Part shown: piece after piece, positions 2,170 through 64,000 of the stretch
Layout: every line of letters starts with the position of its first letter
Position numbering within the stretch: the stretch's first letter is position 1
Assembly: GCA_000388065.2 (NCBI GenBank)
Contig: KB932208.1
Strand: one strand, 5' to 3'
Source of the DNA: Fonticula alba ATCC 38817
Lineage: Eukaryota > Protista > Nucleariida
Length of the DNA: 64,000 nt
Notes under the pieces: generated by a model
The model's database searches: none
What the model was told of the DNA's origin: nothing
The model's input: the letters and a program-made list of their open reading frames with translations, nothing else
Position numbers and translations under genes: made by a program

Positions 2170-2520
2170 GTTTTTAAGAGCGCCCCGCTCGCTCCCGGGC
2201 GAGAGCATTTTGAACACACAGTGCCGCTCTGATATTTTCTTAGTTGCATTCATTCTCTCTCTACCGAAGGTTTGTGCCTCTTCCTCCTCCTCCTCCTCCT
2301 CCTCCTCCTCCTCCTCCTCCTGCTCTCCCCCGCCCGCCCGCTGCTGCACCACCACCACCACCCGTGCTCCCCATCTTCGGGGCGGCCGACCCCCTCCTCT
2401 CCCCCCCTTGCGTGCCCCTTCCCCCTCCCCCTTTGTCTAACACACCCGCTCCCCCCCCTTCCCCCCTCACTTCCCGCCGCCCGGCGCCCTGGTGTCCGCC
2501 CCCGCCGATAAACAGTAATC
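2170..2520 (+). promoter_or_regulatory. Profilin promoter/5' UTR with a probable 5'-UTR intron (2270-2515)
   Basis: TATA-like TTTTTAAG near 2171, AT-rich leader, donor AAG|GTTTGT at 2270, C-rich intron with (CCT)n and CTAAC, acceptor AACAG at 2515, five nt before the ATG at 2521. Confidence 0.6.
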
Positions 2521-3124
2521 ATGTCTTGGGATTCGTACATCACCTCCATCCTCTCCAGCAAGGACATCACCCAGGCCGCCATCCACGGCCATGATGGTTC
2601 CGTCTGGGCCACCTCCTCCGGCTTCAACGTCACCCCCGCTGAGGTCAAGGCTGCCCTCGACACCATGAACGGCTCCAACACCACCGGTACCGTCAACCTG
2701 GCTGGCGTCAACTACATCCTCCTCCGCTTCGAGGACAAGTCCGTCTTCCTGAAGAAGGTGCGCGCGCATGCCATCCCCCTCCGCTTTTTGTTGGCGGCCC
2801 CGTCCGCATTGCCACCCCCCCTCGCGCCTCTGCTGGCTCTTCCTCCGCCCCCCCTCTGCGCAGGGTCTAGTGGCTGGTTCGCCAGCCTCCCCCCTCCTCC
2901 CTCGTATCTGACCCTCGATTCCCTCCACTCTCTCTCTCTTCCCCCCTGTCCCCCCGCCTCGTCGACTCTCCTCACGACGCTCCTCTCAGGGCAAGGAGGG
3001 CGCCGTCATCGCCAAGACCGACCGCGCCGTCATCATCGGCACCTACGGTGATGGTGTTTCCCCCGGTAACGCCAACGTCGCCATCCTCAAGATGGCTGAC
3101 TACCTCTCTGAGGCCGGCTACTAA
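2521..3124 (+). CDS. PFN: Profilin (123 aa); exons 2521-2757, 2990-3124
   Basis: MSWDSYI...AAIHGHDGSVWATS...GVNYILLRFEDKSVFLKK spliced (GTGCGC..CAG, phase 0) to GKEGAVIAKTDRAVIIGTY...KMADYLSEAGY*. Profilin signature with the poly-Pro-binding aromatics. Confidence 0.97.
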
Positions 3125-61030: not shown

Positions 61031-61529
61031 TGGACAGCGGCCGAAGCAGGCCGGGGGGCAGGCAGGCAGACAACAGCAGGGGCGGCGGGTGCAGCACGGG
61101 GGGGGGCAGGAAGCGCACCATGCCCTCGGGCGGGGGCACATCCCCCCGGCACAGAGCGGCTCCTTTTCCGCTGTTATTGTTTGCCGTTCAGCTCAGGAGC
61201 GGGCCCCGCGCGCGGGATCTTGGCTTTTCAAAAAAGTGTGTGTTAATATCCCCCGTGGAGCGTCAGCAACCTCTCCTCCTCCTCCTCCTCCTCTTCTTTC
61301 TCCTCCTTCTGCTTCTCCGTCCCTCATACTCCGCTACTCCCCATCATCTTCCCCGCCCGGTCCCTCTCCTAGGCTTGCCCTAGCCCCGTTCTTGTGCTCT
61401 GCTTCCTCCCCATCTCTGGGTTGGTTGTTGCCGCTCTCTCCCCCCCCCCCCCCCCCCCCCCCCCCCCCCCCCCCCCCCCCCCCCCCCCCTCCCCTACGGT
61501 TGGTGCTTTGCTGATGCGCTGAGACCAGC

Positions 61530-64000
61530 ATGTCTCTATCCGTTTCGGAAATAAGTTTTTATCAGTTGTCTCTGAAAATCATCGGAGCCACGCCCAATCC
61601 CTCGCTTTCTGGTGGCCATCTTTTCTGCACCATTCGCTTCGAGCGCCCGCCGCACTGCCGGACCCTTCCCCTGGCCAGTCCCGTGTCGACCCCTCACCAC
61701 ACGCTCAAAAAGGCTGTCTGGAATATCCTCTTCCAGTTGTATGTGCCCCCGGCTCCCCCCCCCCGGCCCCCCCTCGGCCCCCCTCCCCCCACATCCATCG
61801 ATCCGCCCGGGGATAGCTGCACGGCCTCGGCCCCTCGTGCACTCTCTTCATGCCTTCCTCCCCGACTGACTCTTTTCCGCCCCCTCGCCAACCCATCCCA
61901 GCCATATCTCCTCCGACGACAAGCCCATCATCGAAGTCTTTCACAAGGTCGCCCGGACAGAGATCCTCGTTGGTCGCTTTGAACTTCCACTTCCAGAGCT
62001 CTTTGGCATCTTCCGCTCGACCTCCCCCTTTGAGCGTGCGCATGCTCTCCCTCCGCGCCCCCACCCCCCTGCCTCTGCCTCTGCTCATCCCCCTGCGAGC
62101 GTGCCTGCTGACACCGAGCTCCTCCGCCGGCCTGGATGCCCCTGCCAATGATGGGCTTCAGTTTCCCCTGTGAGAAGCCTCCTCTCAGACAAGGTCTCCC
62201 TCAAGATCAGGCATTCGGTTGTCAAGATCAACCGCCCTCAGTCGTGCGTCTCCGGCCGCATGTTTTACTCTGCGCCACCGCCCGGCCACATTCTCTGCCC
62301 CGTTCTCGCTCTCGTTCTCGCTCCTGCACCCTCTCTCTCTCTCTCTCTCACACACACACACACGCACACACATACACGCATCCACCTCCCCTGTCACTGT
62401 CTGAGCAGCAGCCAGCCGCGAAACCCCATCCAGCCGCCACCAAGCTCCACGATGTCGCAGTCCAACAATGTGCCCCTCCCGCGGGGGTACGTCTCCCCCG
62501 CCAGCACGTCGCCCCTCGACTGCCCTCTCCTCCGCGGTTGTCGCTAACCTCCCTAACTTGGCCCTCGGCTGTCCCAGGTGGGAAATGCGGCGTACGCCAG
62601 ACGGACGCCCCTACTATGTCGACCACAACACTCGGACCACACACTGGGAGCGGCCGGTTGTCTACGATCCTCGCAATGTGTCGCCGGATTTCAACTACCT
62701 CATCCAGAAGCCCGCCGATGGACTGGCCATGATTCGGCGGACCCTGCCGCCCGGCTGGGGTGCGAATATGCCGCTCTTTTGTGCCCACACGCTTGCCCCG
62801 CCATCGCATCAGCGACCTAATATCTCCCCTCCCCGGTGTTCCTCGCGTGCACAGAGGTCCTGCTCAACCCGCGGCCCGGCCTGCAGTACTACTACCTCAA
62901 CCACAATGATCGGAGCAGTACCTGGGACTATCCCGCCCTGCCGCCCCTGTGGGAGTACAAGTTCAACGATGTAGGCACCATCTACTTCGTGGACCATTCC
63001 ACTCAAACCACCACTTGGGATGACCCACGTGTGCCGGCCGCCGCTATGTGCGTGTCTCGCGTCTCTGCTCTCTCTCTCTCTCTCTCTCTCTTTCTCTTTC
63101 TCTTTCTTTCTCCCCAATCTGAGTCCCTTTGCGCTTACCTTCCGTGGCACACGCCCATACCCACGCCCACAGTTCCAATGCTGGCTTCGATAGCAAGACA
63201 CTCAGCAAGCGCATCGACACCTTCTTCCAGACCAAGGGCATCGTCTCGAATAACCAACATCGCGAGCCGATCATTGTCGTCCACCGGGACCACATCCTCG
63301 ACTCATCGGTTATCGCTGTGAACAAGCTCCGCCGCGAGGACATCGAGCGAAAGCTTGTGGTCAAGTTCCACGGGGAGGATGGGCTCGATTTTGGCGGCGT
63401 CGCCCGGTATGTCTTCCCACACCCGCGCCCATGTGCAACCCTACCAGAGGAGGGCGCCTCCTACTGACACCCCTCCCCCCCGACACCCCCCCCCCCCAGC
63501 GAGTGGATCAGCTCCCCTGCGTAATAAGCTCCTTGACAAGGATTACGCCTATTTCCGTGACCTTGAGTCGGAATCCGATCACCTTGGCCACGCCATCGAC
63601 CTTACGCACATCCGGTCGCTGGATGATGATGACGACTCGCGGCAGTTCTACAGCTTCTTTGGCCGTGTCCTGGGCCTTTGTCTGCGCAACCGCATCACCA
63701 TTGACGTGTGCTTCCCCCTTCACATCTACAAGCACCTCCTCGGTGCCGAGGTCACTCCGGAGGACCTGAAGAGCTTCGATCCGGGCCTCTATAACTCCTA
63801 CCAGCTGATGCGGTGCGCCCTCCCCTCCTTTTTCTTTCTTTCTCCGTCTGTCTCGCTCTCTCTCTCTCTCTCTTCTTTCCCTCTCCGCTCTCCGCTCCCT
63901 TCTCGCCTCTCCACTCTGGACCGGCCCATGTCCCAGCTCCGGCACTGACGTCTCTCCTGCTCGTTCATCTCCGGGCCTCTCCAGCAACCCCGAGGTCCTC
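61530..64000 (+). CDS. NEDD4/Rsp5-family E3 ligase (C2-WW x3-HECT), 3'-truncated by the window end, with an apparent 1-nt frameshift at 63514-63517; exons 61530-61738, 61902-62035, 62189-62243, 62409-62486, 62578-62759, 62855-63047, 63173-63406, 63500-63812, 63985->
   Basis: C2-like IIEVFHKV..LVGRFELPLPEL; WW1 LPRG|WEMRRTPDGRPYYVDHNTRTTHWERP; WW2 LPPGW|EVLL..YYYLNHNDRSSTWDYP; WW3 LPPLWEYK..IYFVDHSTQTTTWDDPR; HECT start KLVVKFHGEDGLDFGGVAR|EW, FYSFFGRVLGL, EDLKSFDPGLYNS. Confidence 0.92.

Follow-up and report, generated by a model that had tools for sequence, protein, structure and literature searches.

A pyrimidine-rich fourth intron position in Fonticula alba donor sites, most likely read by a U1 snRNA with G at position 5

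We analysed a 64 000-nt stretch of the genome of the amoeba Fonticula alba (the window; assembly GCA_000388065.2, scaffold KB932208.1, about 337385-401384 as judged from the locus range) and found that the introns we could fix in its protein-coding genes start with donor sequences having a pyrimidine at the fourth intron position (+4), in place of the A that is usual in eukaryotes. This pyrimidine-+4 donor dialect is confirmed in the window. We consider it likely that the introns are ordinary U2-type GT-AG introns, that they follow a lineage-wide dialect G-U-(G>A)-(C>U)-G-(U>C) and that this dialect is read by a U1 small nuclear RNA (snRNA) with G at position 5 of its 5′ arm (the G5 arm).

Introns were predicted by a Viterbi gene finder, with codon usage trained on six Pfam-confirmed exons; an intron needed GT...AG only, and no donor or acceptor matrix was used. 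This donor-agnostic pass produced 47 introns after strand overlaps were resolved. Self-training with position-independent matrices led to 55 introns in 17 models; a first self-training, with the invariant GT/AG columns kept in the matrices, was discarded for over-prediction (148-171 introns). By a partly subjective choice we set aside nine of the 55 introns, namely those abutting gaps (8194, 39598), upstream of an annotated gene start (48192, 60605, 61360), in unsupported mini-genes or exons (30035, 47909) and at places where the passes disagreed (43805, 44253), which left 46 curated introns. As background for donor statistics we took those GT sites of the same genes that are not used as donors (1324 sites); consensus and duplex energies were computed for a set of 49 window donors.

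Homology checks were run exon by exon against Pfam, with joined models serving for length sums and printed translations only. Twelve junctions were classed as homology-checked, most of them by exon-by-exon Pfam continuity; at 11 junctions a Pfam profile match continues from one exon into the next. Mapped to the window, the deposited Uba1 protein is interrupted exactly at 58867, 58689 and 55588, and the modelled products of Cox11 (253 aa) and of an aminotransferase gene located outside the window (462 aa) have the annotated lengths. The introns have the properties of the U2 type: the termini are GT...AG, and removal restores reading frame and protein homology. The U12-type donor /RTATCCTT had no matches in the window on either strand and is absent from the donor set.

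Counted on both strands, the hexamer GTGCGT was observed 71 times (22.8 expected), GTATGT 35 times (3.4 expected) and GTATGC 33 times (8.4 expected); the counts for GTGAGT and GTAAGT were 14 (16 expected) and 2 (3.1 expected). The pattern GT[AG][CT]G was present in 28 of the 47 donor-agnostic introns versus 7.25% of the background (binomial p = 2e-20), and GT[AG]AG in none of the 47. At +4 we saw C or T in 51/55 introns of the final models, in 46/46 curated introns and in 12/12 homology-checked ones, with 56% pyrimidines in the background; A was found in 0/55 introns, the nine set-aside ones included. The 49 window donors have the consensus GT(G 28/A 18)(C 34/T 15)(G 47)(T 35/C 11), with G at -1 in 33, and the commonest hexamers among the 46 curated donors were GTGCGT (17), GTATGT (9) and GTGCGC (7). 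With 69% C and 31% U at +4 in the 49 donors, the U dominance of a Saccharomycotina-type dialect is not seen; the donors conform to GU(G/A)(C/U)G(U/C) with a +4 pyrimidine, the Mastigamoeba type.

A first-pass annotation, made from the sequence alone, had described such donors in roughly 45 introns of 12 genes, with no A at +4 in coding regions. Its observations were borne out: our own count is about 46-49 introns, likewise in 12 genes, all 14 coordinates that it named carry the hexamer given for them on the strand given, and all of these donors except 20722, whose intron enters the gap 20753-21070, were recovered in gene models.

It is very improbable that the pattern is an artefact of reading-frame intron inference in sequence of 67% G+C, or of base composition. 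Most introns do rest on our own gene models, the nine dubious ones were picked partly by judgement, and C is the commonest +4 base at unused GT sites (35%). Still, the donor-agnostic pass alone gives the p-value cited above; G and A are absent at +4 of curated donors though they make up 31% and 14% of the background; even the set-aside introns are without +4A; and Pfam-continuous junctions, the deposited Uba1 protein and matching product lengths all agree.

The dialect runs on beyond the window in adjoining sequence (L001, an extra 5 kb), where we saw donors GTGCGC, GTGCGT, GTACCG, GTGCGT and GTGCGT. One true exception, the only +4 purine seen, is the donor cagGTGGGT (+4G) of the L001 aminotransferase intron 2017-1821 (-); it is homology-supported, by DPYYYLQ/Y and by Aminotran_1_2 profile positions 188/202 across the junction. 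In the window about 28 copies of the motif lie in exons and are left unspliced, including six donor hexamers in the 3-kb Uba1 exon (58406, 58021, 57602, 57026, 56699 and 55676); the hexamer alone is, therefore, insufficient to define a donor.

Positions +3 and +4 are coupled, which is a new feature of the dialect. The curated donors have the +3/+4 pairs GC in 26 cases, AT in 13, AC in 4 and GT in none (Fisher p = 6.5e-8); for all 55 introns the numbers are GC 27, AT 13, AC 4 and GT 2 (p = 1.9e-6). At unused sites GTGTG (36) and GTGCG (34) are about equally frequent. As the gene-finder matrices were position-independent, the coupling was not created by the gene finder. The idea that GTATG and GTGCG donors form two classes differing in exon-side use was not supported (-1G in 8/13 versus 22/33, p = 0.74).

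Donor position +4 is paired first to U1 position 5 and subsequently lies opposite the central A of the U6 box (Parker et al. 2023, PMC10581693). The proposed U1 5′ arm is ACGUACCU, with G at position 5 instead of pseudouridine; the canonical arm is ACUUACCU. A G at this position would face donor +4 and would pair with C (Watson-Crick) or U (wobble) and would match neither A nor G, which would account for the rule of C or T, never A, at +4. Donor +3 would still face a U in U1, hence the acceptance of either A or G there, and side-by-side wobbles, as in GUGUGU, would be avoided.

Duplex energies were computed with AUACGUACCUG versus the canonical AUACUUACCUG. The energy was lower with the former for 49/49 donors (mean -8.5 versus -3.9 kcal/mol), and the area under the curve (AUC) for separating donors from the 1324 unused GT sites was 0.94 with the G5 arm versus 0.74 with the canonical arm. 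In register with the G5 arm, GUGCGU and GUACGU score -10.6 each, GUAUGU -8.8 and GUGUGU -5.8; the last has two adjacent wobbles and is also the missing donor class. The +4G exception cagGTGGGT has full CAG exon-side pairing and scores -9.9. We conclude that F. alba U1 likely carries G5, a reading that draws on the precedent of Mastigamoeba described below.

Several considerations weigh against this reading. No U1 or U6 gene was found by Rfam searches in the window (at the gathering threshold and at E <= 0.5) or in the extra 5 kb of L001. That a donor consensus fits its own complement is partly circular evidence. The perfect complement GUACGU is rare (4/46 curated donors), and avoidance of GUGUG could come from the second GU two bases on. 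The homology-supported Cox11 donor actGTATGT scores only -4.9, versus -5.8 for a hypothetical GUGUGU after G. Precedents for +4 pyrimidines with an unchanged U1 exist in Thecamonas trahens and Micromonas pusilla CCMP1545, as well as in S. cerevisiae and Giardia (bioRxiv 10.1101/2022.06.08.495308), and a survey of 240 species, Saccharomycotina and outgroups, saw no change of the U1 and U6 arms whatever the +4 base (Parker et al., eLife 2023, PMC10581693). A pure duplex-energy threshold for U1, which we also considered, fails, as the duplexes of some supported donors are no stronger than that of the forbidden GUGUGU.

The Rfam searches of window and L001 returned only microsatellite-driven miRNA look-alikes, and a search of the window for the proposed U1 arm returned nothing but the antisense strand of an exonic decoy (22640-22650).

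Alternatively, U1 could be canonical and the +4 pyrimidine set later, by a change of the central A of the U6 ACAGAGA box to G, by loss or change of METTL16, which writes N6-methyladenosine on U6, and of SNRNP27K, or by changed protein contacts. We regard this as unlikely. Most +4-pyrimidine lineages retain a canonical U1, as do Saccharomycotina, Thecamonas and Micromonas, the latter two sharing with Fonticula a fourth intron position that is preferably C/U. In Saccharomycotina, which resemble Fonticula in the departure from +4A, the choice of A or U at +4 tracks METTL16 and SNRNP27K, their loss accompanying the shift from +4A to +4U, with U1 ACUUACC and U6 ACAGA invariant (PMC10581693). A G at the central U6 position would accept C and U too, and the absence of an observed U1 gene in window and L001 is compatible with an unchanged U1. 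On the other hand, the +4 base here is mostly C (34/49), not U, and C does not pair with the central A of a canonical U6; no variation of the ACAGA box was seen in any of the 240 species of Parker et al. (PMC10581693); and a model with a change in U6 only gives no reason for the coupling of +3 and +4. In Saccharomycotina +4U goes with protein loss, whereas in Fonticula +4C dominates and a change of RNA is the likely cause.

The first-pass annotation had predicted compensatory change, such as an A-to-G in the U6 box, an altered U1 5′ end and/or loss of METTL16 and SNRNP27K. In its full form this would be a G5 in U1 together with a U6/METTL16/SNRNP27K side re-tuned to C at +4. Some accommodation is plausible, given that +4C in about 70% of introns mismatches the central A of U6, and the rarity of GUACGU next to abundant GUAUGU, which pairs best with the canonical U6 box, hints at a second constraint. 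Yet in Mastigamoeba a U1 change alone can accompany the dialect, and we judge the double change improbable. Of the predicted compensations, the altered U1 5′ end is the best-supported explanation, through donor statistics and arm fit, and the first-pass interpretation is in part supported; the further suggestion of an undescribed spliceosome variant was too strong, because GUGCGC donors together with the U1 arm ACGUAC have been described for Mastigamoeba balamuthi.

Donor/U1 pairing of the type proposed here, with a G5 U1, is already known from that species; Fonticula would be a further example of this type. M. balamuthi combines GUGCGC/U donors and the U1 arm ACGUAC in an intron-rich genome (Roy and Bowser, bioRxiv 10.1101/2022.06.08.495308). 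The likeness lies in the +4C, +3G donors, which ACGUAC there pairs by Watson-Crick at +4 and by wobble at +3. Fonticula differs in its second abundant class GUAUGY (about 28%) and in strict exclusion of GUGUG. Since Mastigamoeba is an archamoeba (Amoebozoa) and Fonticula a holomycotan opisthokont, the origin was apparently independent. Donor and U1 arm have also co-evolved in Entamoeba (GUUUGU with U1 AACAAAC) and Physarum (GUAUGU with U1 ACAUAC) (bioRxiv 10.1101/2022.06.08.495308), but by substitutions other than those proposed for Fonticula; a Physarum-type arm fits the window donors less well (AUC 0.83 versus 0.94) and would tolerate GUGUGU. A literature search found no paper describing Fonticula donors or snRNAs. 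We put forward tentatively, as a real possibility, the more specific scenario that exactly the G5 U1 and GUGCGY donors of the unrelated Mastigamoeba, which is also G+C-rich, arose independently in Fonticula, with the U6 box still canonical and METTL16 retained.

Few eukaryotic RNA sequences are as strongly conserved as the arm with which U1 recognises the start of an intron. To our knowledge, departures from it are few, all in Amoebozoa and mainly from one preprint. If the scenario is true, a re-coded U1 arm would be met in an opisthokont for the first time. This relative of fungi would then be a second and independent instance of one substitution and would show that donor/U1 co-evolution can repeat one path, perhaps under G+C pressure. 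In most Fonticula introns a C would face the methylated central A of U6, a natural experiment and a system for studying how the U6 hand-over (N6-methyladenosine, METTL16, SNRNP27K) copes with +4C; the allowed GUGCGY and GUAUGY, forbidden GUGUG and rare GUACGU would mark the range of permitted U1 and U6 pairing. In practice, genes of Fonticula have to be predicted with a donor model of their own.

The window has 12 recognisable genes: profilin, Vps4, AATF, a mitochondrial carrier, RPC5, a low-complexity gene, Pus7/TruD, a Vps8-like gene, Cox11, a penta-EF-hand (PEF) protein, Uba1 and a WW-HECT ligase. The donors are listed below with strand and support; a slash marks the junction in profile positions or protein sequence.

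2758..2763 (+): GTGCGC, profilin intron 2758-2989; Profilin profile 1-83 / 84-127 over junction, donor-agnostic pass
6095..6100 (-): GTGCGT, Vps4 intron 6100-5823; model and donor-agnostic pass
6348..6353 (-): GTGCGC, Vps4 intron 6353-6189; AAA_lid_3 entered at profile position 14 by next exon
6841..6846 (-): GTGCGT, Vps4 intron 6846-6720; AAA profile 43/46, one split codon
7060..7065 (-): GTATGT, Vps4 intron 7065-6963; Walker A restored (GILLYG/PPGTGKS), AAA 5/6
7381..7386 (-): GTGCGT, Vps4 intron 7386-7224; final model only
7632..7637 (-): GTATGT, Vps4 intron 7637-7482; model and donor-agnostic pass
7921..7926 (-): GTGCGT, Vps4 intron 7926-7780; MIT profile 39/42
10841..10846 (-): GTATGC, AATF intron 10846-10662; final model only
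11170..11175 (-): GTGCGT, AATF intron 11175-10947; model, donor in donor-agnostic pass
12470..12475 (-): GTGCGC, intron 12475-12249 in an acidic N-terminal part, probably of AATF; model and donor-agnostic pass
16484..16489 (-): GTGCGT, mitochondrial carrier intron 16489-16331; Mito_carr matched by both exons, donor-agnostic pass
20722..20727 (+): GTGCGT, RPC5, intron enters gap 20753-21070; RPC5 profile match stops at residue 126 of the open reading frame (ORF), adjoining the site
21439..21444 (+): GTGCGT, RPC5 intron 21439-21611; RPC5 119-208 in next exon, donor-agnostic pass
21896..21901 (+): GTGCGT, RPC5 intron 21896-22045; model and donor-agnostic pass
22200..22205 (+): GTGCGC, RPC5 intron 22200-22326; model and donor-agnostic pass
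22451..22456 (+): GTGCGT, RPC5 intron 22451-22545; model and donor-agnostic pass
22778..22783 (+): variant GTCTGT, RPC5 intron 22778-22863; model and donor-agnostic pass
35359..35364 (+): variant GTCTGT, Pus7/TruD intron 35359-35450; model and donor-agnostic pass
35999..36004 (+): GTATGT, Pus7/TruD intron 35999-36180; TruD profile 135/147, approximate
36542..36547 (+): GTGCGT, Pus7/TruD intron 36542-36664; TruD profile 254/256
37057..37062 (+): GTGCGT, Pus7/TruD intron 37057-37204; model and donor-agnostic pass
37405..37410 (+): GTATGT, Pus7/TruD intron 37405-37502; model and donor-agnostic pass, TruD 393-412 in last exon
39351..39356 (-): GTGCAT, Vps8-like, ambiguous; pass 0 took in-frame GTGCGT at 39305, +4C in both
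39899..39904 (-): GTGCGT, Vps8-like intron 39904-39792; final model
40462..40467 (-): GTATGG, Vps8-like intron 40467-40340; donor-agnostic pass
41009..41014 (-): GTGCGC, Vps8-like intron 41014-40897; final model
41666..41671 (-): GTGCGT, Vps8-like intron 41671-41494; final model
41951..41956 (-): variant GTTCGT, Vps8-like intron 41956-41810; donor in donor-agnostic pass
42573..42578 (-): GTATGT, Vps8-like intron 42578-42425; final model
43930..43935 (-): GTGCGT, Vps8-like intron 43935-43845; final model
44520..44525 (-): GTATGC, Vps8-like intron 44525-44381; donor-agnostic pass
45503..45508 (-): GTGCGC, Vps8-like intron 45508-45386; final model, Beta-prop_VPS8 33-61 and 66-112 in flanking exons
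45733..45738 (-): GTATGC, Vps8-like intron 45738-45642; final model
46674..46679 (-): GTACGT, Vps8-like intron 46679-46500; donor in donor-agnostic pass
49091..49096 (+): GTATGT, Cox11 intron 49091-49239; CtaG_Cox11 profile 55/59, 253 aa as in the annotated product
51125..51130 (-): GTACGT, PEF intron 51130-50992; donor-agnostic pass
51471..51476 (-): GTACGG, PEF gene, intron enters gap 51209-51409; sequence after ...FDISTVR
55583..55588 (-): GTGCGT, Uba1 intron 55588-55303; E1_UFD profile 66/68, annotated protein spans junction
58684..58689 (-): GTACAT, Uba1 intron 58689 to about 58559, holding a 10-N gap; annotated protein GIEI/AKNIVLAGV
58862..58867 (-): GTATGT, Uba1 intron 58867-58776; annotated protein LYSRQ/LYVFGH
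61739..61744 (+): GTATGT, WW-HECT intron 61739-61901; final model, gene start 61530 and stop match annotation
62036..62041 (+): GTGCGC, WW-HECT intron 62036-62188; final model
62244..62249 (+): GTGCGT, WW-HECT intron 62244-62444; final model
62487..62492 (+): GTACGT, WW-HECT intron 62487-62577; WW domain LPRG/WE..., next exon from WW position 5
62760..62765 (+): GTGCGA, WW-HECT intron 62760-62854; second WW (LPPGW/E) continues in next exon, donor-agnostic pass
63048..63053 (+): GTGCGT, WW-HECT intron 63048-63172; donor-agnostic pass
63407..63412 (+): GTATGT, WW-HECT intron 63407-63503; final model, next exon from HECT position 5
63813..63818 (+): GTGCGC, WW-HECT, acceptor past window end (L001 4931); HECT match stops at site and resumes at HECT 104

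The median intron length was 147 nt, and introns are C-rich on the sense strand (C 44% versus G 22%). The acceptor was CAG in 37/45 introns, and the branch-like motif CTSAC was present in only about half of introns. The pre-acceptor tract is poly-C, not poly-U, with C runs of at least 5 in 23/45 introns and T runs in 1. Examples of poly-C tracts are in the following introns.

43935-43845 (-): poly-C tract
51130-50992 (-): poly-C tract
45738-45642 (-): poly-C tract

There are 14 N runs in the window. The flanks of two 10-N gaps are duplicated, over 46 nt at 28388-28397 and over 34 nt at 58593-58602, so these gaps are unmerged contig overlaps, not missing sequence; the other N gaps have no words common to both flanks. 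The gap 58593-58602 is inside Uba1 intron 2, the donor of which is unaffected, and all other curated introns are N-free. Gaps hide the acceptors of donors 20722 and 51476, and donor 63813 faces the window end. The following gaps interrupt genes.

8222-8613: Vps4 (5′ end)
11607-11707: AATF
20753-21070: RPC5
39623-39729 and 47026-47049: Vps8-like gene
51209-51409: PEF gene

The open exon of Uba1, 55589-58558 (-), encodes 990 aa with 100% identity to H696_04756 [Fonticula alba], deposited as a ‘hypothetical protein’. Long ORFs in the gene-poor regions 0-5 kb, 14-19 kb and 24-34 kb had no Pfam matches, and almost no intron-like units were seen in the window outside predicted genes. The 7-kb stretch 23000-29996, with a G+C content of about 75%, carries long ORFs on either strand, the longest of 657 aa, with no Pfam matches and no intron-like units; it may contain low-complexity intronless genes or be non-coding. 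GT/CA microsatellites at 5333-5430, 12289-12347 and 23008-23084 were matched weakly and below threshold by the Rfam models mir-466 and mir-297; these are chance matches to repeat-derived models.

The modelled start of Pus7 (34573) falls within an intron-like unit at 34408-34641 (+) (ccgGTGCGCGG ... C-rich ... CAG); this unit could be an intron in the 5′ untranslated region, or else the modelled start could be wrong. The last WW-HECT intron is beyond the window end (L001 4126-3958 (-), about 64789-64957); its donor is GTGCGT and it splits the codon of the catalytic Cys (…PSAST-C-HNRLHLPAF). Our model of the WW-HECT product has 667 aa versus 688 aa in the deposited one, which probably uses a wrong later donor (GTGCCC, L001 4066) and reads into the intron.

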